Assembly: GCF_006345805.1 (NCBI RefSeq)
Contig: NC_043000.1
Location: forward strand, 124,062,001 to 124,126,000
Length of the DNA: 64,000 nt
Reading direction: 5' to 3'
Source of the DNA: Octopus sinensis
Taxonomy: Eukaryota
The notes beneath the pieces were generated by a model. It saw nothing but the letters and a program-made list of their open reading frames with translations, was not told the origin of the DNA and did no database searches. A program made the position numbers and the translations under genes. Below are positions 15,498-49,083 of the stretch, piece after piece (the stretch's first letter is position 1; the number at the start of each line of letters is the position of its first letter).

Positions 15498-15616
15498 GCT
15501 TTTCGTGGTTAACTGAGAATTAATCACGAATATCTGTCCATCCATACTTGTGCAATTCTGACTATTCTTTCATTCCATAGTATAATGACGCAGGCGTAGT
15601 TGAACGTTGCAATTAT

Positions 15617-15632
15617 CTCCTCCTTCCTTTTC
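15617..15632 (+). promoter_or_regulatory. TCT/5'TOP-like pyrimidine initiator of the U16 host gene
   Basis: CTCCTCCTTCCTTTTC in a CpG-retaining region about 115 nt upstream of the ATG; resembles ribosomal-protein and snoRNA-host starts. Confidence 0.5.
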
Positions 15633-15741
15633 AAGCGTGGCTCTCCATCTCTACCTGACCTGTTCTCTGAGAGTTCCACAAACTTTGTCTTTTTGTTGCT
15701 CTAACCTTTTTAAAGCAGACCAACTCTTGTGATATTGATAA

Positions 15742-15782
15742 ATGACTATGGCACGCAAAAAGAATAAGCAAGCTTACAAACC
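15742..15782 (+). CDS. U16-host gene coding exon 1 (MTMARKKNKQAYKP)
   Basis: ATG, 41 nt, then GTAAGT donor at 15783; phase 2 matches the next exon. Confidence 0.7.
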
Positions 15783-16586
15783 GTAAGTTGGTCGAAAATC
15801 GCGTAATTTTTCTACTTTATTTTACAACATGGTGGCCATACACCCAAAGTAGCACATGTCTCCTCATATTCTCTCTCTCTCACTCCCTTTTTAACTCTCG
15901 TCACTTTTATTCTTCGTTTCTCCTCCATATATCCAAAGTCCTATTTAAATAATTAGTTAAACTGAAGAGATCATCTTCGTTACTGAAAATTTAATTCTCA
16001 AACTAACACCATTCTTCAAATTTATTCTGTTAAGCTTTTTTTTGTTTTTTTATCTATTTCTCATAATTATTAATTTATAAGGAAATATTTATTCTTGCAC
16101 ATAAACGTTCTGAGTTCAAATTCCGCCGAGATCAACTTTAATCCTTTCGGATCGATGAAATATAGCACCAAAGTATTAGATTCAGTATAACCGACTGTTC
16201 CCTTGTCTCAAATTTAAGGGGCTTCTAAGAAAGTATTATAAATAGCTGCACTGAGGAATGTATTTTAAGTTCTAAGAAATTGTCACGTGTCAATATTACC
16301 AGACACTTTGGATTTTTGGAAGTTATTCATGTATTTCTTTCTTTATAATATATTTTTACTCATTTGAATAGACACCTAAGTCTCGTACGAGATGATTACG
16401 CTAGTACGTGTATGATAGTTTTCCCGTATAGAAAGTATTGATAAAACTTAGGTGAATACCCACTAAACGATCGAGACCGTATTACAATGACCGGTTTTGT
16501 GCTTTAACTCCATATGCTATCTTCTATCCCCAAATCCAATTCATTTAACTCGTCATAAGATTAAAAAAATTGTGAGAAGTCTTGAT

Positions 16587-16794
16587 ATATATATATATGA
16601 AAGAAAAAGGTGTTCAGAATGCTGGATGGTTGTAAAAATATATATTTATTTACATATCACATATTATTTCTTCATATAAGCGCTTTCAACTACTCCTGTA
16701 GCGCTAATATGTAGAAATAATATGGGATATGTAAATAAATATATATTTTTACAACCATCCAGCATTCTGAACACTATTTTCTTTCATATGTATC
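16587..16794. repeat. Foldback inverted repeat (about 95-bp arms, short loop) in intron 1
   Basis: ATATGAAAGAAAAAGGTGTTCAGAATGCTGGATGG... pairs with ...CCATCCAGCATTCTGAACACTATTTTCTTTCATAT. Confidence 0.9.
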
Positions 16795-17732
16795 AAATCT
16801 GTACATCACCCCTAATACTTCTAACATATATATATATATGGCAATCTTACGATCTATCTCTTGCTAGCTTTATATGAAATTCTACCTCTCGGAGCTAGAG
16901 CTTTTGTTCCAGTTCAGACTTCATTTCATTAGCTGTTCACTTTTTACACACAATTATTCTTTTTAGGTACTTGATGGCAAGTTTCAATCTTAGTAAAACC
17001 GATTATTTTGTCAGAACTTCGGGCTTTTTTGTTGCGGCAAATAAGACACTATGTTGGAATAATCTTAAATCTTTGAAGTTCGACCTTAGCACAATTTCTA
17101 ATAAATTTGAAATGCAAAATTCTATGTACTTGGAATTTAATCTTATGTAAACATAAATTAATACCAATAACTTTTAATACTGACAACTTTTAAAAAAAAT
17201 GAATGTCAACACATCTAATTTCCATATTGCCAAACAATCTTCCAATTCGTAACTTTTCTAGCCTACTTTTGCCACTTGATGTGTGTGTGTGCATTTAAAG
17301 GAACATATTTTCGAGAAAATTTTAATTATTTTCTCTGAAATTCTAGGCGAATGTAATTTTCTTTTTTTCAATTAATGTCAGACTGTTACACTGTTAAAGT
17401 GGTTGGCATCCAGCCATAGAAACTATGCCAATGCAGACATTGGAACTTGATACAATCTTCCTGCTTTTTGGATCTGGTTAAACCGTCCAACCCATGCCAG
17501 CATGGAAAACAGGCGTTAAATGATTATGATCAATCTCAATAGAAGAAATGTTATTAAAGAACAATTGCTCTTTCTAGAAAAGTGAAATAATAATGAAAGT
17601 AGTTAGGGTAAATCCTTCCTTATTTTATTCATTAACCATTTCTCTCAGTTAATTTGACCAGTCTATTTAAATGCATCCACTTTTTTGTTTCTCTAAGTCT
17701 TGTCTGATGCTAATATTTATTGTTATTTCTAG

Positions 17733-17796
17733 GCCAGCTGGTGGGGCCACTATCGCGCCTGCTCAAGTAAACAAAACAAAAGCTCCATTAGACAGT
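17733..17796 (+). CDS. U16-host gene coding exon 2 (PAGGATIAPAQVNKTKAPLDS)
   Basis: TTATTTCTAG acceptor, GTAAGT donor, 64 nt (phase 2 to 0), open frame. Confidence 0.8.
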
Positions 17797-18329
17797 GTAA
17801 GTATTGCATATGAGCTGATGAAATGCCTTGTCTAAGAAAAAGCATTCCATTTTTCAGCAAAATAGCATTATGAAGTCCATTTTAAGATGTCTCGACAAAC
17901 TGATTGAAGTAACTGAATTGAGATGGATGACTTGCAAGCATGTTGTTGAGTGATTGAACTAAAAAAATATTGCTTTGAAACATTTGCTTACCTGTAATAC
18001 CAATATCCGATCACTAGGATCTGTGTAGCTTGTGTTAACATAAATGATAAGACTTGGCCAGTTGTGTCATTGTTATTAGTTTACATAGATCAGTTGACAG
18101 TTATTGTTTGTATGGGCTTCCATAGATCTAGATCTATTTAAGATTTGGTCTATTCTTGACTATTGGTTCTTTGCCATTAAGAATTTCCATGAAAGCAATG
18201 GTGACAGAAACAAATTCTTCAACTGTATCTAATATGGAAGCTTAACTGAATTGCCTGTTTATGATTTCCAGCTGTTGCTCATTTGTTGGTTTGAAACCTT
18301 GTTAGATTGTGTCCAAAAGAAGACCATTT

Positions 18330-19426
18330 AACTGGGGTTTGGCCGAAAAGATCATAGGTTGACCAAGATACTCATAGAATGTGACCAAATGAGGTTTATT
18401 TTTCAACATAGTCCCCCTTGTGGTTTACACACTCCTTCAATTGGTGTTGCAGTGCTTGGATCCCATTGGTGAAAGAGCTTTCATCCTGTTGGATATTATG
18501 TTATCACCGATACTGGTTCCCAGTCTAGTGTTTTTTCATGTTGTGGGACATGATAGATGGTGTTAAATTGGGAGAATAAGGTGATAAACCAGTTCAAAGC
18601 TACAATTATGCACAGCAGTCCTGATGGTGTTGCCCTTTTGTAGATAAACACAATGCGTTTTGCATTTCAAAAATACTGAAGCCATCCCTTTCCCTGCAGA
18701 TGAAATGATGTTGGCTTTCTTTGGAGCAGGTGAGAAGGGATGTTTCCTTTGCATGGATTGTCTCTTTGTCTCTGGTTCAAAGTGATGAACCTAACCCTCA
18801 TCCTGGATTAGGAAATGTTCAAGGAACCCAGCTGGTTCTGCCTCAAACGATATCACATTTTCCGGTGATGTAATCAACTTGATGTGCTTTTGAACAGCTG
18901 TCAGATGTGGCACCCATTGAGCAGAAATGTTCATCATGCTAAGTTCATTGTGTAGAATATTCTCAACTCTCTCTCACAGGATATGCTTATAACTTTGGTT
19001 GTTTGATTTATAGTCAACTATTTGTCATCCATCACTATTTGGTGAACATGACCAATGTTTTCCTTCATGGTGGCAGTTGCAAGACGTCTAGATCTTGGGC
19101 CACCTTCAACACCCTCCCTTCTCCTAAATTCAGCTGTTCACTTTTGCACTGTTGATAAAGCTGGAGCATCATCCCCTAATGTAACAACCAAGTCAGCATG
19201 AAAGCCATTGGTGGCTAAACTCATTCTGCAGGTACTTGATAGCACCACAAGGTCAAATTCATTTTCAAGAGAAGTCACTACTGCTTACTTTCGAAGTCTT
19301 TGAACTGCCAGTTTACTTGGAAAGAAACAATGCAGTTATTAAGAAGAGCTGAAATTATGTGTGTGAGATTTCACAACTCTAGCATCACTCCTTCATAGCC
19401 TATGAACTTTTCAGCCCACCTTTGTA
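18330..19426 (-). mobile_element. Degenerate mariner element in intron 2
   Basis: Minus-strand HHFEPETKRQSMQRKHPFSPAPKKA...SAGKGMASVF; imperfect TIRs of about 27 bp (GGCCGAAAAGATCATAGG / CCTATGAACTTTTCAGCCC). Confidence 0.8.
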
Positions 19427-19930
19427 TTTATACTGTGTTTCATCTCCCACATTCCATGCTAAGAGTTTTGCACAGATCGTACTATGTAGGACTGTGCTAC
19501 AACTCTGGAATTTCTGCGGTTCCTCTTTCTCCCAGCAGCCATGTACAAATCCTCAAACTAAATATTGAAATACATCACTCTATGTAGACTTAAGTGTCTG
19601 CTCCCTCTTCATTTATCTAGCTCATTTTTAACAAGTAGAATAGAGAAATGTTACTGTGTTTCTTGTCATACTTTAAGCTTTAAAGATGTGTTATTGCATG
19701 ATTATTGATGTAACTAGTAATTATTAGTTATTCATGTTTGTTAACTCTAACTATTAACTTCTACTGTTCATCTGTTAACTAAAAATTTTAGAAGCTATTC
19801 CAGGATTGTACTGACTAGATTATTTTTTTCTCTGTATCATGTCCTTTTAGATGTAGCTTTTGGATCTTAGCTAAAATCTGTTTCATTATCTTTAGTGAAA
19901 TGTAAGTTTTGAAATGTTCTCTTCTTACAG

Positions 19931-20212
19931 AAAACAGAAGCATTCGTAGACAGTTTGTATAATGCAACATTTCAGAGGTATGACGCACGGCCAAATTCCA
20001 TGGAAGGTGTTTATATAGTACTTCGCTGGTATAAATTTAGTAAAACATGGATAACGCTGTATGTTGGTGAAGGAGATATCCGTTTAGAACTAAACCGCTT
20101 ATTTGGCCCCTGCAAGACATGCAAACCAATTACCAAATACTTGTCATCAGTTTCTAAGACCGATCGTAAGAGATTGCTTGCTCTGAAGTGGATTCCATAT
20201 CCTGATTTTAAG
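19931..20212 (+). CDS. U16-host gene coding exon 3, GIY-YIG-like core (GVYIVLRWYKFSKTWITLYVGEGDIR...)
   Basis: CTTCTTACAG acceptor, AAG|GTAATT donor, 282 nt phase 0-0, no stops, protein-like composition. Confidence 0.85.
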
Positions 20213-21414
20213 GTAATTTGTATTCCATTTATTATTGGGAAAATGTACATAGTCTGCTTTGAGGTCTTTAGGATTATTAGTTGTTTTTACAAACATTCTT
20301 TTCAAGCAAGTTGATTTTTACACAAATGTACATTTGCAATATATATATATCAATATCATTATCATTTAGCAATCCGTTTTCCAAGCTGGCATGGGTTAGA
20401 TGGGCTGACTGGGATGGGTAAGCCAGAGAGCTGTACAGGGCTCCAGTCTGATTTGGCTTGGTTTCTATAGCTGAATGCCCTTCCTAATGCCAACCGCTCT
20501 ATGTGTCACTGGCATTGGTCAGTGAAACTAATTTCACATGTCTTCTCATGTACAGTAAATGGCATGGCATAACTACAGATTTCTGCACCCCCCTGACTTT
20601 GGATGATCATAACAGAAAAATGGATATTTTTTAATGAAATTTTCTATGACTATGTGTTATATCATGTAGATTCTGAATATGCAAAATTTTTTTGGAGGAA
20701 GTGTTTTATGAGAGGGTGGGGAATTTCAGAAAATTCACTGGATATTTTTAAATGAAATTCTCTACAAATATACCTCAGACTATGTAGATTCTGAGGACAT
20801 AGGAATTTTGGGGGGAAACAATTGGGGGTTATTTTTGAGAACTATTCCCCACTCGGGTGTTTCCAAAGGGGTGGGGCAGAAATCTGTAGTTATGCCCAGT
20901 AAATCCCCAAAGATCTTAATCACTTGTCATTGTCCCGTGTCTTCTTGGGTCTACCTTTTCCACAGGTTTCCTCCACAGGATCGGCATGTTGAATCATGGA
21001 TGTTGGAAGATAGACACAACTATCAATTGACTATGTTATAAAACTATAACCCACTGGTTACCCACCTGTTGCTAAAGATTTTGTTGATTGGAAAACTTAA
21101 AAACTTACGACAGGTGTTGTCAGTGGGTTATTATTCTGCTGCTGCTCTTCAACCTTTCTGTACAGCTTGTCGTCACCTCCACCCCTGCTTCTTATCACCT
21201 TCCCCTCCATATTTACTATTGTCCTCATTTACAGTTCACTGCCTTCATCTCAAACCATTTCTTACAATTACCCCATGCTCTTGCAAACTCTACCTACCCA
21301 CCCTTCCTGATCTACTTCTACTTTCTCTTCTATTTACCTTCTTATACCTTGGTGTCACCATCTTTATTACCCTTTCCAGTTTCTCCCTAATTACTCCCAC
21401 CCACCTTTATATTA

Positions 21415-21795
21415 TGTAGCTGTGTGGTAAGTAGCTTGCTTACGAACCACATGGTTCCGGGTTCAGTCCCACTGCATGGCACCTTGGGCAAGTGTCTTCT
21501 ACAATAGCCTTGGGCCGACCAAAGCCTTGTGAGTGGATTTGGTAGATGGAAACTGAAAGAAGCCCGTTGTATGTATATATATATATATATATATGTTTGT
21601 GTTTGTCCCCCCCACCCAAACATCGCTTGACAACCAATGCTGGTGTGTTTATGTCCCCATAACTTAGCGGTTCAGCAAAAGACACCAATAGAATAAGTAC
21701 TAGACTTACAAAGAATAAGTCCTGGGGTTGATTTGCTTGACTAAAGGCGGCACTCCAGCATGGCCACAGTCACATGACTGAAACAAGTAAAAGAG
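21415..21795 (+). mobile_element. tRNA-derived SINE (long family)
   Basis: GCTGTGTGGTAAGTAGCTTGC...GGGTTCAGTCCC head, internal (TA)n, tail ...GACTGAAACAAGTAAAAGAG; related copies at 32213, 52837, 54152, 61800. Confidence 0.8.
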
Positions 21796-21904
21796 GGTAG
21801 CAATGTATCTCCTTTACAGCAAGAAACCATTTCCCATCCCTATATCCTACTTCAATCACTCAACATCTAGCATTATGCTGCCTCTCTTTTTACTATACTC
21901 CCAC

Positions 21905-22250
21905 CCAGTGAAGGCACATGGCTCAGTGGTTAGAGTATTTGGCTCACGATTGTAATGTTGCAAAGTTCAATTCTTGGCAGTGCGTTGTGGCTTTAAGCAA
22001 GACATTTTATTCCATGTTGTTCCAGTTCACTCAACCAGCAAAAATGAGTGGTACCTTTATTTCAAAGGGCCAGCCTTGTCACAGTTTGTATCATACTGAA
22101 TCTCCTCGGAAACTATGTTGAGGGTATGCCTGTTTGTGGAGTGCTTAGCCACTTGCTTGTTAATTTAATGAGCAAGCTGTTAACATTGATTGGATCAACT
22201 GGAACCCTCAATGTTGTTGCTGTCAGAGCACCAGTTGTGCTCTCACTCAG
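21905..22250 (+). mobile_element. tRNA-derived SINE (third family), degenerate
   Basis: A-box-like TGGCTCAGTGG and B-box-like AGTTCAATTC followed by a SINE-type body. Confidence 0.6.
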
Positions 22251-22526
22251 TTAAGGGGGTCTTTTTAATCTTGCTAGTTGTATGGCCATCTCACTAGTGC
22301 TGGCACCACAAGAAAAAAGCACCCAATACACTCTGTAAAACGGTTGTCATTAGGATGGGCATCCAGCCATAGAAACCATTTTAAAGCAGATAGTGGAGTT
22401 TGATGCAGTTCTCCAATTCATGGACCCTGTAGAAACTTTCAACCCATGCCAGCATGGAAGGCAGATGTTAAATGATGATGATGATATCCTGAAGTACAAA
22501 TCTAAGTGCTATAATGTATTGAATCA

Positions 22527-22740
22527 TCATCATCTTCATCGTTTAACGTCCGTTTTCCATGCTAGCATAGGTTGAACAGTTCAACTGGGGTCTGGGAAGC
22601 CAGGAGGCTGCACCAGGCTCCAGTCTGACCTGGCAGTGTTTCTACAGCTGGATGCCCTTCCTAACGCCAACCACTCCGTGAGTGTAGTGGGTGCTTTTTA
22701 CATGCCACTGACACAAGAGCCAGTCAAGGCAGCACTGGCA
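22527..22740 (-). mobile_element. RTE LINE 3' UTR fragment
   Basis: Reverse complement of the 3' end of the RTE at 41660-41825, including the (GAT)n tail. Confidence 0.85.
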
Positions 22741-23155
22741 TATTGTACTATTTCTGCTAAAGTTTGGACCATGTCAAGTGAAATAAGTAAAAATGCTATG
22801 CCATTCTTCAAATGAATTGATAGCAGCTGATGATGATCTTGTTCAGTGTTACTAAATCATTATTATCATTTAGTTATTGAAATTAGTGGCTCTGAGACAT
22901 GCACAGAATATTGTTATATCATCTGCTTAATGTTATCTAAAAGGCTCTATCCTAAAATGATCTCAATAAGTGGCTTCTACAGTGTTATCGATTCTAGGAA
23001 TTCAATATTTCCATTTTGAATTGTAATCAGAAAATATAATAATTTTTTACAATATTTTAGTTTTCTTATTTAATGTACTTACTGAATATATTATTAACAA
23101 AATGACAATTTATATGCTTAATAAATATGCTAACATGTATTTTTGTAATTTTTAG

Positions 23156-23233
23156 ACTACCATGAAAGACATCAGAACTGTCATTGCTGCAAAATATAAC
23201 GATGGTGGTGAACCGCCATTTAATTGCGTTTAG
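23156..23233 (+). CDS. U16-host gene coding exon 4 (TTMKDIRTVIAAKYNDGGEPPFNCV*); exon continues as UTR to a donor after 23276
   Basis: TTTTTAG acceptor with GCTAAC branch-like site; phase 0; TAG at 23231-23233; ATG|GTAAGT donor 43 nt later. Confidence 0.8.
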   Translation, partial: TTMKDIRTVIAAKYNDGGEPPFNCV

Positions 23234-24091
23234 CAAAACATACAGAAGGTTTTAGCCTGCTTGTATACAGAATATGGTAAGTTCTTTTCATCGATACTTT
23301 TTTTGCTACAATATTTCTAATTAAAAACGCACTATGTCTCTTAAAAGTTTATAGTGATTTTGTAAAACAAATATAACAATGTATTACAGTAGTACTTGGA
23401 ATGTAACTTGACAAAAAAAAAGCTAAAACTATAGTGATATATAAAGTCAATATATAATGTAATGTGTTTTTAGCCATTAGTCCCAAATACCCATTATATT
23501 TATGGCAAAAATACCCTAATTTCATTCAGTTTTCCCTTTTCCTTTAAACTCTGGTACTTATTCTATTTGTCTCTTTTGTTGAAATCACTAAATTATAAGA
23601 GCATAAACAAAGCAACACCAGCTGTTGAGCAGTGGTGGAAGTTACACAAAACTCAATGGGGCATGTGCCCAAACATGCAATGTATCAAATAGACTCAAAA
23701 GGCATTGTTTGGCCCAGAGTTATAATAGGAGAAAGACATGCAATGGGACTGAACTTGAAGCCATGTGGTTGCAAAGTGAGTCATACCTGCATTTTCATAG
23801 CAGTTAGTCCTTATTATCATATGGAACTCTTGAATTAGAAACAAAAGGGAATAGTCATTTGCTTTTGAATAAATCCCAAAGAAGATTATAATTGACTTCT
23901 GCAGAAAATATATAGAAACAAAAAGTGGGCAAGTAATATTTCATGCATGTGGCCCTCTCCCACTTGGAAATGGTATAATGTGGCCTCCAGTTGATGAAAA
24001 GTTGCCGATCCCTGCTCTACGTGAAGCTTAATTCTTTTCTCAACAACTGTAAAATGGATGTAAATTATAATTGATACTTTGTGTCATCAAC

Positions 24092-24191
24092 TGACAATGA
24101 TGTTGTAATTTGCGTCTGATGGTGCAGTGCGCAGACTACTGCCTATTGTCAAAATGCCACAGGCTCATTGAAGAACATTGGAACTGAGCAA
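24092..24191 (+). ncRNA. SNORD16: Box C/D snoRNA U16 copy 1 (subfamily A)
   Basis: Box C ATGATG, guide GTAATTTGCG, D' CTGA, C' TTGAAGA, D CTGA, GCAA end; 5' terminal stem degenerate. Confidence 0.85.
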
Positions 24192-24251
24192 GTTATTGGT
24201 ATTGCTGCAAATATTTTTATATAATTCTGCTAATTTTATAGATTTATGTAA

Positions 24252-24764
24252 TCTATATATATAAAACTGTAGTTGTGTGAGTGTCTGTCCCCTTCGATTT
24301 AGATTCCTAACTACTCCCACATTTTGCGGTGCAGTTTAACCAAATTCGGGTATCTTATAGTCGTGATTCATATCGAGCCCGTCTGAGTATTAGCGCGCGT
24401 CTACGATGAGTCTACGATTTTAAAAATGATTTAACATCATTTTTTATTCCATTTTAATGCATAATTTTTCATGTGTCGATGGCGGCGGAGTTGGCGTCCA
24501 TGGTCACACCTGCACCTGTTTGCTTCTCCCCCTTCTTCCCTCCCTCGTGAAGCTGTGGGGAAGGGAGTGTAAAGAAATCAACGTCGTAAAGCGTTGTCAA
24601 GGAGACCAGCGTTCTTTTAGAACAACGACTTCATGGCTTGAAGACACCAAAACAGAAATGGCTAAGAAAGCCCGAATTGGCATCTATAAGGGAAGTAACT
24701 CTATAAAAATGCTTATATAGTTATTTCCCTTACAAACCCGTGCAACACCGGGCGATACTGCTAG
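24252..24764 (+). mobile_element. Complete non-autonomous Helitron (family A)
   Basis: A|TC...hairpin...CTAG|T, inserted between A and T with no TSD. Confidence 0.9.
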
Positions 24765-25029
24765 TACATATATAAAAATAGTTGTTTTAATATCATTTTT
24801 CCATGCTTGCATGGGTCAGATGGAATTTGTTTAGACACATTCTCTATCATAAGAAGACATTTCTGATGACCCCAACATGTTTTCATGCAAGATTTGAAAT
24901 GGACACTGCTTGCACGATGGTGACACTTGCTTACCACTATTGCACAACATCAAGGCAAGGAGATGATAATACATACAGACATTTATTTATACCAAGTCTT
25001 TTCAAGGTTTTGATTGGCTCATGGTTACA

Positions 25030-25355
25030 GTAGTAGACCAGCAGAATTCATCTACGAAGCAATTGCCCCAGCTCCCCTTCAGGGTTGGCGAAAGCGATGT
25101 GGTGGACAACGAAAAACCTGGCTAACGACAGTCAAGGCTGATCTGGAACCCAACCTAGGCCCCTATTTCAACGACAGTCAAGGCTGATCTGGAACCCAAC
25201 CTAGGCCCCTATTTCTATGGCCTTCGCCGCTGGAATAAGGAGTGGTTGGAGATCACGCGGTCGTTAGCCTCAAATTGCCAGGCCTGATCTGCGTTTGTGA
25301 GAGATGCAGCATTGAGGATGAATGAAGCCAGCTCAACCTACCCTGGGTGAATGCT
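25030..25355 (+). mobile_element. 3' fragment of an RTE-like LINE with an internal 46-bp tandem duplication
   Basis: Translates RKTWLTTVKADLEPNLGPLFYGLRRWNKEWLEITRSLASN...SAFVRDAA, resembling RTE ORF C-termini (recalled); AACGACAGTCAAGG...CCCCTATTTC duplicated. Confidence 0.55.
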
Positions 25356-25863
25356 GTCTCAAGACAAGAAGACATTAGTAGACACTTGACCCAAGTGCCA
25401 CAAAGTGGGACTGAACTCAAGACCATGTGGTTGGAAAGCAAACTTATCTCACATCCATGCCTGTTTATTTTTAAAACTAATGAGATGGCTATGATGACTT
25501 TTCACATTTCAGTGCACCTGGCTCAGCTCATTTGTGTTTTCAATGGCTAGTAGTGTGAAAAAATATTACACATTCTAGGACACGAATATTCAATATTCTG
25601 GTGTCACATTATTCAATGTTTATTTGAGAACTTACTCTTCAATACCATATTGATGCCGGTTGGGAATAATTAAAAGACTTTTGATTTTATTTGCTTGGTG
25701 TATGATATGAATACAAGATGTAAGAAAGTATTTTGTTGTAGACGTATTTACCACTAGTAATATTCTAGTAAGGCTAAGTTTGCAACATATTCCTGTCATT
25801 TCAGGAACAAGGATTTTCCCCTCTTTGTTTGGTGATATTATTGTACTATAGTGTTGAGCTAAT

Positions 25864-25967
25864 TTGCAATGATGCTGTAATTTGCGTCTGATGGTGCAGT
25901 GTGCAGACAGTTGCCTGCTGTCAATTAATGTCACTGGCTCTCATTGAAGAAGTTTTAAACTGAGCAA
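25864..25967 (+). ncRNA. SNORD16: snoRNA U16 copy 2
   Basis: TTGC/GCAA terminal stem, C/D'/C'/D boxes, internal GACAGTTGCCTGCTGTCA as in vertebrate U16 (recalled). Confidence 0.92.
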
Positions 25968-26682
25968 GTTAATTGAAGCGAAGAATTCATTAAATTTTGT
26001 TTAAGGATTCTGTAATTTTACGTGCTATTTTGTATGATAATTTAAAACTAAGTAGAAAAAAATTATCTGCAGTGCCTCTTAGGTCTTCTCAGTAAGTTAA
26101 CTGAGAGATTCAGGTTGGAAAGTGTATGATATTGAAGGAGCAAATGTTTTGTCTGCGTTAACGGGGGTGGCTAGATCTACCTCAATGCCATAGCAACCAA
26201 GGTTGATCACTTTAAGAAATGTCGTGGAAAACTAGCTCAGGAAGGCAGAGATGCTACTCCCTGAGACTCCTTTCGGAGCCCCCCCCCCCCCTGCCCTGTA
26301 TAGTAAATACCCCACTGTGTAGTAAATGAGAATTCATGCTATTAAGTTGAGGTACAGGATTGGTGACAAGTGATGTTAAAACTCTTGCATGCTACAAACT
26401 TCTGAGTTTACCTGGTTGACAACTGGTAATGGCATGCAGTTGGTAATTCATCTTGTGGTAATACAACACAAAATATTACCTATACTGGCTTGAACACCCA
26501 ATAGAAATAGCCAGAGAAGTAACTTGTATAAATTATGGTTATATCAATTATCAAATCAATTTCTACCAAATTATTTTTGGAATTTACATATAATAAAGTA
26601 ATTAAGTTGGATATTTGGTGTCTCATTGAATTATTCTTGGATATGGAAAATTCAAAGGTTTTTTTTTTCTTTGAGTGTTAAC

Positions 26683-26785
26683 TTGCAGTGATGCTGTAAT
26701 TTGCGTCTGATGGTGCAGTGTGCAGACAACTGCCTATTGTCAACAATGCCACTGGCTCTCATTGAAGAACATTGGAACTGAGCAA
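26683..26785 (+). ncRNA. SNORD16: snoRNA U16 copy 3 (subfamily A)
   Basis: TTGC/GCAA stem, GTGATG box C, intact guide, D' and D CTGA. Confidence 0.92.
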
Positions 26786-26929
26786 GTTGATTTAACGTTG
26801 AAATATGATATAGCATCCCCTCTATGAAATGTTGTTATAAGATTTCATGGAGGGGATCAGTTATAATTCTGATAGAAATTGCAATTCATGGGGAAAAGGA
26901 TGCAATATATAGGAATCAGGAATTAAGGC

Positions 26930-27157
26930 GTTGAGCTGGCAGACATGTTAGTGTGCCGGGCGAAATGCTCAGCAGTATTTCGTCTATCGTTACGTTCTGA
27001 GTTCAAATTCCGCCAAGGTTGACTTTGCCTTTTATCCTTTCGGGGTCGATAAATAAAGTACCAGTTTCGCATTGGGGTCGATGTAATTGACTTAATCCCT
27101 TTGTCTGTCCTTGTTTGTCCCCCCAGTGTTTAGCCCCTTGTGGGCAATAAGGAAATA
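26930..27157 (+). mobile_element. tRNA-derived SINE (short family)
   Basis: GAGCTGGCAGA...GAGTTCAAATTCC...GGGCAATAAGGAAA. Confidence 0.85.
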
Positions 27158-27586
27158 TATATAGGAATCAGTAAGAAACCTGAGGAAGTCCTTTTACAGC
27201 TACTATTTCATAGATTTGTCATCATCATAACTGTTGCAGTAGAGCATCATCGTTTCGTGAAAGTGTTAATAATGTCTTGAGTAATCTGGTGGCCAAACTG
27301 TACACCCGATTGGTTTTTCAGTGATGACAGTTATTTAATCTGAAGTTAGGTGTTTCTTGTAACTCAATCCAATAACTGCTTGATATTTTGATACAATTTA
27401 CTTAACTAAGGTTTTATGGATGGATATTGTTAACAACAGCAAATGGAGTAACTTTTGTTATCCATAGTGAGATTTTTGCTGATAGCTATGTTGCAATACA
27501 TCATAGAGTCGGAGTTAGTATTGTTACTCTGACAGCTTTGTTTTAATTACATTAATATGATACATGTTGTATGAAGATAATCAAAC

Positions 27587-27691
27587 TTGCAATGATGTGG
27601 TAATTTGCGTCTGATGGTGCAGTGTGCAGACAGTTGCCTGCTGTCAATAAATGCCTCTGGCTCTCATTGAAGAAAAGTTAAAACTGAGCAA
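27587..27691 (+). ncRNA. SNORD16: snoRNA U16 copy 4
   Basis: All boxes, guide and terminal stem intact. Confidence 0.92.
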
Positions 27692-28486
27692 GTTTATTTA
27701 CTCCTACCATCTTGTTGAAAATCTTCCAAATCAAAATCTCAGTCATGTAATGATTGAACTGAAAATAACTAAAAAATAGGTTTGTTTATTTAAATGCCTA
27801 TAGTGTATTTACGATTTTGAAAATTGGAATGCCAACCACTCTGATAGTGTAGTGGGTGCCATTTGCGTGACACTGGTATCTGCCACAACTGCGATTTTGC
27901 TCAGCTTGATGGGTCTTAGTAAAAAATCAATTGCAATTAGTGACATGGACATCATAAGCAAAAAAAAATAGTTTTCCCTTGACCTTTTTGTAGATTTTTA
28001 AAGTAAGATTTACAGGTAGTAAATTAATTTTTTCCTTTCAGAAACAACATAGTCAAGTATGCATAGAAGTTTTGATGAAAAGATAATTTCCAAAATAAAT
28101 TGCAAAAATTCAACAATATTCAGATCAATTTTAATAGTGGACATTACAAAATATGAATAAATGGTAAATGGATTAAAGTTTCTTTCTCCAGATTAGAGTT
28201 CATATCTTCCTTTGAATATAAATATGAGTGGTTCAATTCTGGTGGCATAGGACTGAGTGATAAATGTGCTTGCAGGTGAATTTATGTCACATAGGATGTT
28301 ATGACTTACACTGGTCACCATAATTATGTTCAGCAGAAGTAATGATAATTGTTTAGTTGCAAATGATGGTCTCCATATGGTTTTATTTTTCTCTTACTCT
28401 TTCTCACCAAAAGCAAGTCTGTTTAGTGTAACCATGATAACTGATGAGATACTGATGCCTGTGTTGTGTTTAAACCTGATGCTAAC

Positions 28487-28591
28487 TTGCAGTGATGTGG
28501 TAATTTGCGTCTGACGGTGCATTGTGCAGACAGTTGCCTGCTGTCAATAAATGCCTCTGGCTCTCATTGACGAAAAGTTAAAACTGAGCAA
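28487..28591 (+). ncRNA. SNORD16: snoRNA U16 copy 5
   Basis: All boxes intact; C' is TTGACGA. Confidence 0.92.
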
Positions 28592-29049
28592 GTTCATTTA
28601 CTCTTACTGTCTTGTTGAAAAATCTTCCAAGTCAAAACCTCAGTCCTGTAATGATTGAGCTGAAAATAACTAAAAAAAATAGGTTTGTTTATTTAAATGC
28701 CTATAGTGTATTTACTTCAGGTTAGATTATTTTGAAAACTGGAACGCCAACCACTTTGAGAGTGGGTGCCATTTGCTTGACGCTGGTATCTGCCACAACT
28801 GCGATTTTGCTCAGCTTGATGGGTCTTAGTAATAAAATTAATTGCAATTAGTGACATGGACATCATACAATAAAAAAAGGTTATCTCTTGACCTTTTTGT
28901 AGTTTTTTTTTTAGTAAAATTTTGCAGGTAAATATCCATATGGCTTTATTTTTTTCTTACTCTTTCTCACCAAAAGCAAGTCTGTTTAGTGTAACCATGA
29001 CAACTGATGAGATACTGATGCCTGTGTTGTGTTTAAACGTGATGCTAAC

Positions 29050-29154
29050 TTGCAGTGATGTGGTAATTTGCGTCTGACGGTGCAGTGTGCAGACAGTTGC
29101 CTGCTGTCAATAAATGCCTCTGGCTCTCATTGAAGAAAAGTTAAAACTGAGCAA
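29050..29154 (+). ncRNA. SNORD16: snoRNA U16 copy 6
   Basis: All boxes, guide and terminal stem intact. Confidence 0.92.
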
Positions 29155-29609
29155 GTTCATTTACTCTTACCGTCTTGTTGAAAAATCTTCCAAGTCAAAA
29201 CCTCAGTCCTGTAATGATTGAGCTGAAAATAACTAAAAAATAGGTTTGTTTATTTAAATGCCTATAGTGTATTTACTTGAGGTTAGATTATTTTGAGAGT
29301 GGGTGCCATTTGCGTGACACCGGCACAGGTGCCAATTTGCTTGACACTGGTATCTGCCACAACTACGATTTTACTCAGCTTGATGGGTCTTAGTAATAAA
29401 ATTAATTGCAATTAGTGACATGGACATCAAAATAAAAAAGGGTTATCCCTTGACCTTTTTGTAGTTTTTTTTAAAATTAAAATTTGCAGGTAAATATCCA
29501 TATGGTTTTATTTTTCTCTTACTCTTTCTCACCAAAAGCAAGTCTGTTTATTGTAACCATGACAACTGATTACATTGATGCCTGTGTTGTGTTTAAACTT
29601 GATGCTAAC

Positions 29610-29714
29610 TTGCAATGATGTGGTAATTTGCGTTTGATGGTGCAGTGTGCAGACAGTTGCCTGCTGTCAATAAATGCCACTGGCTCTCATTGAAGAAAAG
29701 TTAAAACTGAGCGA
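29610..29714 (+). ncRNA. SNORD16: snoRNA U16 copy 7 (D' CTGA changed to TTGA)
   Basis: Guide intact, D' altered, 3' stem GCGA. Confidence 0.88.
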
Positions 29715-30991
29715 GTTTATATAAATGCTTCTACTTAAACATGTTATGTGAATTTCAGGGTAACCTTTCAATACCAGTCACCTCATCCCAAATTTAACTG
29801 TTTGAAACTATTTGCATAATCTGATTTAAACTGTCATTGAAACTGAAAAATTGATTTTTTTAAATTTATGTAATATGGAAAGTTTATTCTTGTATTTTAA
29901 TAATTTGGGGTTTAGCCTGATGTACATAATATTGATATACCAAGTTGTAAGAAGTTATTACAAAGGCTTCTGGTTGTAAAACACTATCTCTAAAAGTTGT
30001 TCAACCTATACCAGTATGGAAAGCAAACAAAATTATCATGATACCTTACTGAACTCTGGTTTTATGTGGTGCAAGGGAATAAACAAAGTTGCATGATCTT
30101 TATTTACCATAACAGTAACCAGCAAAAGAAGGATTAAGCTTGAGTGTAGTTAAAGTTTTGCTGTTATTGTAGTTTTTTAATGAAACTAATACCAACTAGT
30201 TATAAATTGTAAAGTACAGCAAAATAAATGTGTAGCATAAAATATGATTAGATAAAACAAGGAATAAAAATTTTTATGGCAAAGAAATTGTCCAGGAAAG
30301 AAGAGATGTAATTTTATCATAATAGTCATCAGCAAAAGTAATTAGGTTTATGTGCTGGCAGAATAATGTATCTTGACTGGGATATTGTAGATGTGGTTAA
30401 AAGTACTGTTACTATTTGTAGTAAAACCTAAATTGTGATTTTAGTATGAAGGCCATCTATTCAGCTTATTAATAAACTAGCCTAAATAGGAGGATTTCAC
30501 AATGTTAAATAATCAGTTGTTTTCCAATGGCTTGTGCTTTTCTGATTTCTTTTTAACATATGTATGGTGACAATTATTTATCCTTGCCTCATACTTTGGT
30601 GTGATTTTATGATTCTGTTGTGTCAACACCCCCAGACGATGAAGTAGGCTAGCCCAACACGTAGATATAGAGGGAGAAGCCTAGACGTTGAGAGTTGAGT
30701 ACAGGTCATCCAAACATGCGATATAACAGTGGCAACGAGGATGAGATACTCACACAGCCACTGTGTAGTATTGCAATATAACAGTGCCAATGAGGATTTC
30801 ATAGCTCAGCCACTGTAGTATTGTGATATAACAGATTCTAAGATTTTATGACTGATTATTCTTGGAATATTGTAATGTTTCAGAGATATGTATCACAATA
30901 CTTAAAACCAGGATTAATATATCATTACTACAATAGCTTACCATTTAATTACATTTATATTTGTCTATGTAGTGCTTGAAGATGATCAAAC

Positions 30992-31096
30992 TTGCAATGA
31001 TGTGGTAATTTGCGTCTGATGGTGCAGTGTGCAGACAGTTGCCTGCTGTCAGTAAATGCTTCTGGCTCTCATTGAAGAAAAGTTAAAACTGAGCGA
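30992..31096 (+). ncRNA. SNORD16: snoRNA U16 copy 8
   Basis: All boxes and guide intact; 3' stem GCGA. Confidence 0.9.
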
Positions 31097-31592
31097 GTTT
31101 ATTCTTATGCTAAACATGAAATCATTAAATGTTATATAATCTTCAGGTCGAGTCTTTCTGCTAAGAAACACCCTTTGTCCCAAATTAACCACCTGTATTA
31201 TAATCTAAAATTTCATCCAAGCTCATATGTCATTGTATAAATAAGGGTCCAGAAGTTAAAACCTCCGGTTTTCTGCAATACCTTTGTATCTCAATCTCTA
31301 GAGCCTATTGTTTTTTCTGTTATTTAAAAAAAATTTATTGCCACACAAAAAGTTGATTTATTCATGTGAAAAATGTGTACAAATTCGTCAACGCTTTTGA
31401 CACTAACCCAAATGAGGTTGTTCTTGGTTCTATGATACAAACTTATAAAGTGATCTCAATTAAAACCTCAGAATTTCCTGTAACTTTGTTCCAGCATAAT
31501 AATTATAACAAAAGAGTTAAACATTTGATATTTTCATAAAGTCTAATATTTTTCATTGTTCATTGAAACTTTTTTTTTCTTCTTTATTACAG

Positions 31593-31835
31593 AAAGCTGG
31601 TCTATCTTGTGAATATAAGTCCATATGCCATCTTAAACATCAGAGAGGTTTAAAGAACAGAAAACCTATTTTTGCTGTGAATTACTTTATAATTCTCACA
31701 ACTTCCAATTTGGTAAATAAATGATGAATCTATATGAACATGATGCCTTGTTTTTCTCCAATGTGATATACTGTATAAACTAATGTAATTTATGCATTTT
31801 TCTCACAATAATAAAAATAAACTTTAAGGGTGCAT
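31593..31835 (+). other. Putative terminal non-coding exon of the U16 host gene
   Basis: Strong acceptor T9CTTCTTTATTACAG ending 31592; AATAAA at 31810 and 31816. Confidence 0.55.
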
Positions 31836-32212: not shown

Positions 32213-32555
32213 TAGGCGTAGGAGTGGCTGTGTGGTGAGTAGCTTGCTTACGAACCACATGGTTCTGGGTTCAGTTCCACTGCGTGGCACCTTAGGCAAG
32301 TGTCTTCTACTATAGCCTCGGGCTGACCAAAGCCTTGTGAGTGGATTTGGTAGACGGAAACTGAAAGAAGCCCATCATATATATGTGTGTTTGTTCTCCC
32401 AACATCACTTGACAACCAATGGTGGTGTGTTTACGTTCAGCAAAAGAGACCGATAGAATAAGTACTAGGCTTACAAAAAATAAATCCTGGGGTCGATTTG
32501 CTTAACTAAAGGTGGTGCTCCAGTATGGCCACATGACTGAAACAAGTGAAAGAGT
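32213..32555 (+). mobile_element. tRNA-derived SINE (long family)
   Basis: Homologous to 21415-21795. Confidence 0.85.
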
Positions 32556-47070: not shown

Positions 47071-48000
47071 TTTTTTAAATAAAGCAAAAACACAAAGTAA
47101 GAATCAACTAGTCATGACTAGTTAGCGCGGATGCGTGACTACGCGAGTGCGCGCACCGGGACCACTGTTCTGAAGTAGTACCGTAGATTCGAACGTTAAG
47201 GAACGCAACAAGTACCGCAAGGTAGTTTTGCCGATTGTAAAAGAGATTGGACGAGGAAAGTTTTGTCAAAGAAAGCATTCACTATTTTGATTTATTCGGT
47301 AACCCTTTCAATACATAATAACGTACTTGATCGATCCACTTAGCTTCGAAATCCAATTATCCATTCTGAAATCAACGATTTGGATGACTATCATTATGGT
47401 AGTCTTCCGTTAGAAACAGGCTGTTTTTAACGAAAGAATACCATCATGATTATCAAAGAGCGTTAAGAGTGACAACGTAGACTTTCCTGCTTTTGTTTAC
47501 GTTGTCATCGTGTCTTCCTTTAAAAATTATACGATCAGATTTCAGTATTTAAAGAAGGAAAATACTCGACGATGAACTTAAATGGCTGGGACCCACGATT
47601 CACAATAGAGCCTATACAACGTTATAATGATGCATATAAATAGTTACTAGGGTTATTATATACGATGATTTTTAAAAAACTTTGTTGCCTGACAAGAATC
47701 GGTAAAGTTTATTAATTATAAACTTCAAAATTCAAATAATTTCTAAAATAGCATCGATATTACCCATTAAAAAGAAAAAAAAATATCGATTATCATCTTA
47801 AAGTATCGGCTGAAACGAACAAAATAAAAAAAATAACAATAGTTTCACATAACTGAAAATATCATTAGAGACTTTAAAAATACAAATCATATTCGTCGGC
47901 AAATTGCTACTAGTATACTTAAAATACTTAAATATATAATATTAAAATCGAGTGGTAATTATGGTTTAAATATATTAAAACAAACTCCTTTCCCAGCTGC

Positions 48001-48092
48001 GCCCGCATAGCTCAGTCGGTAGAGCATCAGACTTTTAAGACTCTTTCTAAGAAGGAATCTGAGGGTCGTGGGTTCGAGTCCCCCTGTGGGCG
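48001..48092 (+). tRNA. tRNA-Lys-TTT: tRNA-Lys(UUU) with a 19-nt intron (48038-48056)
   Basis: Acceptor GCCCGCA/TGTGGGC, D-arm GCTC/GAGC, anticodon stem TCAGA/TCTGA, anticodon TTT, intron at canonical 37/38, one T-stem mismatch, oligo-T terminator 8 nt downstream. Confidence 0.93.
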
Positions 48093-49083
48093 AAGGCAGT
48101 TTTTTTTTTCTTTTTATTGCAAGTAAATATAATTTCGTATTATTTAAGTTGATAAGTATACATAAGGAAACAACTCAGAATTACTTTGATTGTTTTTTTT
48201 CCATTCTTTCTGATTTTCTTTTATTCGTAATCCTCTTTTAGTTCCGAAGTACTAACAGCCTATGCTTCTGTTCGGAAAAACGAAAATTCTTAATCATAGG
48301 ATGATGAGCAAGAAACAGAAATTCTATATTTTGTTGGTGAAATAGTACTATTTCAACTGTAGCAAACAACGAGGGACTAGCTCTATTTTCAACTGAATCT
48401 ACCGTTATATGTTAACACGGTGTCAGTCAAAATGTTAATAGCCAACAAGGCAGCGTTATACTATAACGCACTCGTTTCATATAATTGATATTTTTCTTAA
48501 TTGGCAACATATTTCATGACTATATAAAAATTTGGTTTGAGTAATGCAAAATTTCCTGATACGACAAATTACAGTTAGATGTTAAAAATATCTAAAAGCT
48601 AATGTGAGCAGTGCGTTTAGTATACGTTGGTAAATAAAATTGATTCCATAGATATTTTGACATTTCTTCTTTTCTAGGGCCCCATGAAAATGAAAGTATT
48701 TGCTTTTCCTGATGACCAAAAAGTGAAATAGTTTTTATGGGAGAAAGGTGAAAACTTTATTAATTTGTTTAAATATAATTGAGGAACAAGATTAATTTCT
48801 TTAATTAATTTCTCATCAGTTTCAGTTCAAATTCATAGCGACACTAGATTTTGAATAAAATGCTCTGTACATATATCACTCACTAGTTGGCACCCGAATG
48901 CTCTTATTTCATGCAATGTATGTTATACGTCCAGTAATACTGGTGCTTGCTGACTTACACAAGAGATAAGTCTTCTTAGGAAGATATTGTTCGCAATGAA
49001 TATTTCTTGCGACAGAGCTCTCTTTGTAATTGGGGCTTTTCATTTTAACTCCTCTTTTACCATTTGATATATAGCTGGGTACC

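Follow-up and report, generated by a model that had tools for sequence, protein, structure and literature searches.

The stretch of DNA considered here, referred to as the window, is a 64,000-nucleotide (nt) segment of the Octopus sinensis genome (RefSeq assembly GCF_006345805.1, contig NC_043000.1, positions 124,062,001 to 124,126,000), and positions without a further label are counted from its first letter. Over the 27.5 kb compared, it agrees at 100% with chromosome CM016862.1 of GCA_006345805.1. The window holds a four-exon gene for a protein of 154 amino acids (aa), followed on the same strand by an array of the box C/D small nucleolar RNA (snoRNA) U16 (SNORD16). The gene and the array very probably belong to one transcription unit, in which the U16 copies lie in intron sequence of the 3' untranslated region (UTR).

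In the arrangement proposed here, a single RNA polymerase II (Pol II) unit of about 16 kb would run from about 15616 to about 31740 on the + strand and yield two products. The first would be an mRNA with four coding exons encoding the 154-aa protein. The second would be U16, derived from intron sequence past the stop codon: a donor 43 nt past the stop would open about 8.3 kb of 3'-UTR intron sequence, a conserved terminal exon with a poly(A) signal would close it, and after splicing, debranching of the intron RNA and trimming by exonucleases would free the snoRNAs. U16 would guide 2'-O-methylation of 18S rRNA through its invariant GUAAUUUGCG element, and a 4-bp external stem (AACU...AGUU) could permit assembly of the small nucleolar ribonucleoprotein (snoRNP) regardless of how far away the 3' splice site is. 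The main mRNA would join 23276 directly to 31593, its sole 3'-UTR junction would lie 43 nt past the stop, and the protein output would be spared from nonsense-mediated decay (NMD), not limited by it. We lean slightly towards this statement taken whole, that is, one unit, two products, direct joining, and an NMD-safe mRNA.

The joined coding exons comprise 465 nt (154 codons and a TAG), and all four exons are bordered by GT donors and AG acceptors. The product is identical to XP_029635761.1 of O. sinensis (LOC115211037; P0003) and to CAI9720917.1 of O. vulgaris, 98% identical to XP_014785502.1 of O. bimaculoides, and 77% identical to the protein of Argonauta hians, whose orthologous gene agrees in its four exons and their phases. 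Comparison of the Octopus and Argonauta coding sequences gives a ratio of nonsynonymous to synonymous substitution (dN/dS) of 0.135, with a dS of 0.98. The open reading frame (ORF) must therefore belong to a real gene, kept by purifying selection. Since neutral sites are near saturation at a dS of about 1, any non-coding block that still aligns between the two lineages is constrained. A lookup of the exact protein returned only two genome assemblies and no RNA contigs, and a literature search on the LOC identifiers gave no result.

Past the stop codon, U16 was identified with the Rfam SNORD16 covariance model (RF00138; gathering score 45 bits). The eight matches span the whole model and lie without exception on the + strand, and their number far exceeds chance. 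Six are above the gathering score (49.3-63.5 bits, E 1e-7 to 1e-11, model positions 1-100 covered). Another, copy 3, falls 0.4 bits short of it and belongs to an orthologous lineage (Os3/Ob2/Ov2) with a compensatory change of a hairpin pair, from GACAG..CTGTC to GACAA..TTGTC. The remaining one, copy 1, is probably a pseudogene. Judged by their sequences, seven of the eight copies are likely to be functional.

Four octopod genomes supply 27 copies for alignment, 26 of which are intact, the other being the decayed Os1. Box C (UGAUG), the guide GTAATTTGCG, the internal hairpin, box D (CUGA), and the terminal stem are invariant in 26/26 intact copies, and box D' deviates in just one of them (Os7, TTGA). 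The guide is identical to the Rfam consensus, and nearly every copy is flanked by AACT on the 5' side and AGTT on the 3' side, which lengthens the terminal stem by 4 bp. The U16 guide element directs 2'-O-methylation of 18S rRNA at the fifth nucleotide upstream of D'; by analogy with the vertebrate family, the octopod copies would have the same target.

The array lies directly downstream of the orthologous gene, and on the same strand, in all four octopod genomes. Copy number ranges from five in A. hians and six in O. bimaculoides to eight in O. vulgaris, and O. sinensis has seven intact copies besides the decayed one. The Argonauta copies have lineage-specific substitutions in common; arrays thus expand and homogenise within lineages. 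Neighbouring copies are 560-1770 nt apart. This spacing would suit small RNA genes with promoters of their own, and invertebrates often transcribe the members of such tandem arrays separately. The U16 copies might then be independently promoted, or cut out of a plant-like polycistron without splicing, and lie beside the protein gene by chance. However, the upstream flanks beyond the 4-nt AACT are unconserved between copies and between species, which leaves no shared promoter element at a constant distance, and despite the changes in copy number the array has kept its same-strand linkage between the same splice elements in four genomes. We regard independent expression as extremely improbable.

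The interval between decayed copy 1 and copy 2 (24191-25864) is 1.67 kb long and contains a 24-nt CT-rich run at 24523-24546. Because the first intact U16 of O. bimaculoides lies only 967 nt past the stop, most of this interval has no counterpart there, and it looks like an insertion specific to the O. sinensis/O. vulgaris lineage. In Argonauta, the first U16 follows the donor after about 575 nt.

Two splice sites bracket the copies. Splice sites were scored with a home-made donor and acceptor position weight matrix (PWM), and the scan was relied on only for these two. The donor at 23277, 43 nt past the stop, scores 9.7, compared with 5.9-7.4 for the three coding donors, and Argonauta has ACATG/GTAAGTT 27 nt past its stop amid otherwise unalignable sequence. 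With a score of 13.8, the acceptor at 31592 is the best between 23234 and 31800; at the same boundary, Argonauta has a pyrimidine tract of different sequence and TAG. A BLAST comparison of 13-34 kb of the window with the Argonauta locus, simple repeats aside, aligns only the promoter and exon 1 (15565-15874), exon 3, exon 4, the U16 copies, and a block at 31574-31721. The U16 copies and this last block are all that aligns between the stop and 32 kb.

The block is 79% identical to Argonauta over about 150 nt. Its conservation begins exactly at the acceptor AG (31592) and ends at GGTAAATAAA (AATAAA), and in this it has the signature of a conserved non-coding terminal exon, with the AATAAA at 31716 as the poly(A) signal. 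The same hexamer recurs at 31810 and 31816. To judge by these signals, the transcript most likely ends near 31740, after the first of them, and not at 31835, where an earlier note on this DNA had placed the end of the unit. An alternative coding exon was considered for the block and rejected: in Octopus the block can be read through in frame 0, but in Argonauta the frame is broken by indels of 1, 1, and 8 nt and an early stop. The four octopod genomes agree at every position of the AG and the first 32 nt of the exon (31593-31626; L001 20866-20899, L002 19235-19268, L003 26250-26283). The start of the exon is more tightly conserved than the coding exons, despite a dS of about 1; a binding site for a protein or a microRNA (miRNA), or a structure, might account for the constraint.

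Evidence from RNA comes from the cuttlefish. The HMMER search described below found a Sepia homologue (P0022; 165 aa, 53% identical), which is intronless on ten Logan contigs; three of the runs behind these contigs are Sepia esculenta RNA-seq (PMC10141105, PMC10442824, PMC9538352). In five S. esculenta contigs, the stop and the 28 nt after it (…CATGATTG) are joined to ATTTCATTTACAG…, about 120 nt in all, and then to poly(A). In a sixth contig, the same 28 nt continue into GTAAGTGTTTT and 1.15 kb of unspliced sequence, with the GTAAGT retained. The stop-proximal donor of the cuttlefish is a real, used 5' splice site. The spliced mRNA has a short mature 3' UTR and is abundant enough for its contigs to assemble repeatedly. 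With a donor and a terminal exon conserved on either side of the array, and with the Sepia donor spliced to a poly(A) exon, one transcript with two outputs is therefore well supported.

This is the single dual-output transcript that the earlier note had put forward, and most of the parts from which it was built hold. The four-exon, 154-aa frame proved exact in its coordinates, splice sites, and identity to the RefSeq protein. The eight U16 copies are all there, six at or above the gathering score, one 0.4 bits below it, and one decayed. The GTAAGT donor 43 nt past the stop is conserved in Argonauta and its orthologue is spliced in S. esculenta, and the strong terminal acceptor at 31592 with its AATAAA is likewise conserved in Argonauta.

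Table 1. Coordinates of the gene, the U16 copies, and the flanking signals within the window
Feature	Position	Strand	Evidence or remark
Pyrimidine tract TCTCCTCCTTCCTTTTC, candidate TOP-type start	15616..15632	+	sequence read; core conserved
Exon 1, coding part (ATG to donor)	15742..15782	+	same exon and phase in Argonauta
Coding exon 2	17733..17796	+	exon join; phase matches Argonauta
Coding exon 3, core of conserved domain	19931..20212	+	81% identical to Argonauta over 298 nt
Exon 4: last 25 codons, TAG at 23231-23233, 43 nt of 3' UTR	23156..23276	+	
GTAAGT donor opening the 3'-UTR intron region	23277..23282	+	PWM 9.7; conserved in Argonauta
U16 copy 1, decayed	24092..24190	+	32.5 bits; deletions, broken terminal stem
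U16 copy 2	25865..25966	+	50.1 bits; orthologous to Ob1 and Ov1
U16 copy 3, compensatory internal-hairpin variant	26684..26784	+	44.6 bits, 0.4 under gathering score
U16 copy 4	27588..27690	+	55.1 bits
U16 copy 5	28488..28590	+	63.5 bits
U16 copy 6	29051..29153	+	54.2 bits
U16 copy 7, D' box TTGA	29611..29713	+	49.3 bits
U16 copy 8	30993..31095	+	54.5 bits
Polypyrimidine tract and CAG acceptor of terminal exon	31569..31592	+	PWM 13.8
Conserved non-coding terminal exon, AATAAA at 31716-31721	31593..31740 (3' end approximate)	+	Argonauta alignment

A stop-proximal donor is found beyond the octopods and the cuttlefish. In the gastropod Babylonia areolata, the TGA stop of the homologue is directly followed by GTAAGT (L005 15151-15162), so that the distance from stop to donor is 43 nt in Octopus, 27 nt in Argonauta, 28 nt in Sepia, and 0 nt in Babylonia. 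No SNORD16 was found within 10 kb downstream of the Babylonia homologue or in the locus of the bivalve Solemya velum. An intron at or just after the stop codon may be ancestral to the protein family and older than the arrival of U16.

The conserved donor also bears on the possibility that there are two transcription units, the protein gene ending soon after exon 4 or splicing nearby, and the array and the exon at 31593 being transcribed from a promoter of their own in the region of about 23300-25860. Past the stop there are indeed an ATTAAA at 23320 and an AATAAA at 23868, and the pyrimidine runs at 23530-23545 and 24523-24546 could be starts of the terminal oligopyrimidine (TOP) type. However, none of these signals is conserved in Argonauta, with its 575 nt or so from donor to first U16, and the short distance from the stop to the first intact U16 in O. 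bimaculoides leaves no room for the run at 24523. Two units would also leave a strong, conserved donor just past the stop without a role, whereas in Sepia this donor is used and transcription runs more than 1.1 kb beyond it. A separate promoter for the array is thus improbable.

In vertebrates, an intron as a rule carries a single box C/D snoRNA, placed some 70-80 nt ahead of the 3' splice site. The octopod array departs from this rule: between the end of the last U16 and the terminal acceptor lie 497 nt in Octopus and 240 nt in Argonauta, and what is found instead is the conserved external stem AACT/AGTT. By analogy, this stem could compensate for the long distance to the 3' splice site, since splicing-independent assembly of the snoRNP is known from the vertebrate literature.

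A different division would keep the single unit and split the array by short non-coding exons, with one U16 per intron as in GAS5 and other SNHG genes, and with the mRNA held down by NMD. This would restore the vertebrate rule, and tandem duplication units of about 560-900 nt could each bring an exon. Two paralogous 25-nt candidate microexons, at 28903-28927 and 29465-29489, reach total scores of 17.6-17.8 and are partly kept in O. bimaculoides. However, several intervals between U16 copies hold no credible exon. When each inter-snoRNA interval was scanned with the PWM in three species, the result was ambiguous or empty and gave no consistent picture; the best total in 29714-30992 was 8.3, and there was nothing in 31096-31592 or in Argonauta (L002 18997-19236). 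The terminal exon is conserved with Argonauta, whereas BLAST found no conserved sequence between the U16 copies. The introns among the copies that had been suggested earlier, in the plural, thus find no internal exon that is conserved or convincingly predicted.

The multi-exon division can also be weighed by its consequence for the mRNA. SnoRNA hosts are enriched among NMD targets, the protein-coding TAF1D included (PMC4233243, PMC5238794), and the threshold for NMD that depends on the exon junction complex (EJC) is 50 nt (PMC5238794). The only junction for which there is evidence lies 27-43 nt past the stop and therefore inside the 50-55-nt zone in which EJC-dependent NMD is not triggered. 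In Sepia, the mature 3' UTR is only 28 + ~120 nt and is assembled in many runs, so the mRNA is stable, and the distance from stop to junction is below 50 nt in three lineages. Conservation of so short a distance argues, if anything, for escape from NMD and not for limitation by it, and the NMD limitation proposed for this mRNA in the earlier note is unsupported. We consider an array split by non-coding exons rather unlikely. The most specific form of the opposite reading, in which a single intron of about 8 kb feeds the whole U16 array, the copies are assembled via the external stem, and selection holds the junction less than 50 nt from the stop, is put forward tentatively and is somewhat less likely than not.

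For the unit and its two outputs, we infer that the Octopus donor pairs with 31592, that internal exons are not obligatory, and that processing takes the route outlined above. Several points weigh against this reading. The joining of 23276 to 31593 in Octopus is deduced from conservation only: the copies lie on one strand between a conserved donor and a conserved acceptor, and use of the donor is seen in Sepia RNA only. The first 1.1 kb of the retained Sepia intron contains no SNORD16, and the downstream Sepia exon, sought within the same 1.1 kb, was not there. The ATTAAA at 23320 and the AATAAA at 23868 could give early polyadenylation in some transcripts. Animals usually carry one snoRNA per intron, and internal exons predicted by the PWM, the two microexons for example, may belong to multi-exon isoforms. 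Finally, the 50-nt rule may not extend to molluscs.

The candidate for a TOP-type start is the 17-nt pyrimidine tract at 15616-15632, which begins 126 nt and ends 110 nt upstream of the ATG; only eight other pyrimidine runs of 15 nt or more occur on the + strand of the window. Its core (CTTCCTTTTC / CTCCTCCTTTTC) is kept in Argonauta and in Sepia complementary DNA (cDNA), at a constant spacing from an upstream TTCCATAnTAT block, and promoter block and tract are conserved across three coleoid lineages. One Sepia contig (L009) begins 13 nt downstream of the equivalent tract. Transcripts of 5'TOP genes start at a C that is followed by 4-15 pyrimidines. The tract and the Sepia contig fit a TOP-type start for the host without proving it, and exon 1 probably starts near 15616. 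The tract that had been noted about 115 nt upstream of the ATG is thus present and conserved, and it lies where a TOP start would sit.

Two further elements were observed in intron 1. The block TTTTACAACATGGTGGCCAT…GCACATGTCTCCTCA (15819-15870), just 3' of exon 1, is also kept in Argonauta and might serve as a downstream promoter element or an enhancer. An AT-rich palindrome at 16612-16772 matches several miRNA models on both strands. A miRNA was rejected here, as the scores are far below gathering (MIR6027, 53.5 against 95) and occur on both strands; the palindrome is most likely an inverted-repeat element.

The divergent upstream neighbour of the gene in Octopus, Argonauta, and Sepia is MSH6. 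In a Sepia cDNA (an S. esculenta RNA contig, L007 577-5284), the start codons of MSH6 and the host gene are about 180 nt apart, and the 5' ends are head-to-head and overlap. The gap between the two genes is about 6.4 kb in O. bimaculoides and about 15.7 kb in O. sinensis, and the annotated MSH6 start of O. bimaculoides maps to about window position 1 (about L001 3546). A tight bidirectional promoter for MSH6 and the host was rejected for Octopus, the Sepia MSH6 protein matching no exon within the window.

The host protein belongs to a small family. Exhaustive HMMER searching gave 18 homologue clusters, besides one spurious match to a 1114-aa repeat protein (P0004) that was discarded. The clusters are 24-77% identical, measure 93-202 aa, and come from B. 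areolata, S. velum, Sepia, and transcriptome or environmental assemblies. A profile search of a set of 5.8 billion proteins found no further members. The label "orphan" that the protein had been given is therefore wrong, and the family has so far been seen in molluscs and in transcriptome or environmental assemblies. Its invariant residues are P56, G61, G83, Y105, K121, and W122.

The protein had also been described as GIY-YIG-like, and of this description only weak hints at the level of the fold survive. An AlphaFold (AF2) model from the 19-sequence alignment has a predicted local distance difference test score (pLDDT) of 84 and a predicted template modelling score (pTM) of 0.80. After a basic N-terminus, with an N-terminal helix, the predicted order of elements is beta-beta-alpha-alpha-alpha-beta-alpha, which resembles the GIY-YIG core with one extra helix. 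GIY-YIG proteins recur among the weak Foldseek matches: against the PDB nothing falls below E 0.4, the best template modelling (TM) score being 0.29 to a GIY-YIG enzyme, T4 EndoII, and against BFVD the top match is a phage GIY-YIG protein (E 0.011, probability 0.92, TM 0.36/0.41), with two further GIY-YIG proteins lower in the list. The GVY…YVG motif thus gives a slight lead at the level of the fold. No TM-score reaches 0.5, however. None of the 19 members matches the Pfam GIY-YIG family (PF01541) at E up to 1, the 154-aa protein has no Pfam sequence match, and a profile search of PDB sequences found none. GIY-YIG nucleases are marked by the Tyr of GIY, the Tyr of YIG, an Arg in the first helix, and a metal-binding Glu. 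In this family, the residue at position 63 may be Y, F, or L, Y79 is kept in most members but not in all, and many members have S, G, A, or Q in place of R86. Conservation is lacking for the Tyr of GIY, for the Gly of YIG, and for the catalytic Arg. Since the catalytic Tyr and Arg are not conserved, membership in the GIY-YIG nuclease superfamily is unsupported. What the model and the alignment describe is a small uncharacterised mollusc protein family with a confidently predicted fold, under purifying selection.

Two other elements of the window may be mentioned. At 48000-48093 on the + strand there is a tRNA-like element of 92-94 nt (58.3 bits against the Rfam tRNA model), followed by a T-rich run at 48100-48115. 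ARAGORN assigns it no anticodon; the candidates are an intron-containing tRNA gene and a tRNA-derived short interspersed nuclear element (SINE). Secondly, 21477-21567 and 32285-32372 both match the same Argonauta segment (L002 21263-21352) at 84-86% identity, which marks them, by alignment, as an interspersed repeat common to Octopus and Argonauta.

The earlier note did not recognise this architecture as one described for U16. A literature search for cephalopod snoRNA hosts found no paper, and precedents exist in mammals. TAF1D and EIF5 are protein-coding snoRNA hosts whose RNAs are NMD-sensitive despite intact ORFs, the distinction between coding and non-coding hosts has been called artificial, and snoRNA hosts occur among TOP genes (PMC4233243). 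As proposed for octopus, one Pol II transcript of these human genes gives both a protein-coding mRNA and intron-derived snoRNAs. The host proteins are unrelated, and TAF1D carries several different snoRNAs, whereas the octopus gene carries a tandem array of one. Furthermore, NMD sensitivity is documented for TAF1D, whereas the octopus junction sits in the NMD-safe zone.

The second precedent is SNURF-SNRPN/SNHG14, where a long 3' extension past the coding exons holds the SNORD116 and SNORD115 tandem arrays in its introns. Here, as in octopus, box C/D snoRNAs of one type are arranged in tandem downstream of coding exons. However, the snoRNAs of SNURF-SNRPN/SNHG14 are orphan, brain-enriched, and imprinted, and they number tens of copies, one per intron between repeated non-coding exons. 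The octopus locus has a canonical rRNA guide in 5-8 copies and no sign of repeated conserved exons.

It is textbook knowledge that TOP host genes encode snoRNAs in their introns. GAS5, UHG, and other SNHG genes resemble the octopus locus in the pyrimidine tract at the putative start, the many snoRNAs, and exons that are poorly conserved save at the ends. The difference is that GAS5-type hosts have no conserved ORF, whereas the ORF of the octopus gene evolves at a dN/dS of 0.135 and its family is found in several mollusc classes. If the single-intron design with NMD escape is true, it would be a dual output opposite in logic to GAS5. To our knowledge, processing of many snoRNAs from one intron has not been described in lophotrochozoans, and the locus would then be an instance of it.

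No concept is overturned, since mammals already offer examples both of protein-coding snoRNA hosts and of snoRNA arrays past a coding region. What is new is the combination of a canonical rRNA guide in 5-8 tandem copies, its position past the stop codon of an unrelated protein gene, its stability across the octopods, a stop-proximal junction, and a strongly conserved terminal exon. The locus raises the question whether several box C/D snoRNAs are processed from one intron in molluscs, and whether the 50-nt NMD rule has shaped the positions of UTR introns in lophotrochozoans. It is a natural case for the interplay of snoRNA dosage, host-gene choice, and mRNA surveillance outside vertebrates.

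The closest comparison is with vertebrate U16 itself. The octopus copies match the Rfam family over its full length, and their layout of box C, guide GUAAUUUGCG, D', and D is the consensus. In mammals, U16 is hosted by RPL4 (PMC3035437). There it is a single copy in an intron of that gene, whereas in octopus the host is another gene, the copies are many, and they follow the stop codon. The arrangement of array and host has been stable since Octopus and Argonauta split, while the copy number turns over. Thus, a universally conserved rRNA-modification guide that vertebrates keep in RPL4 would come, in octopods, from an array of several copies placed in the 3' UTR of a protein gene that is unrelated and lineage-restricted.

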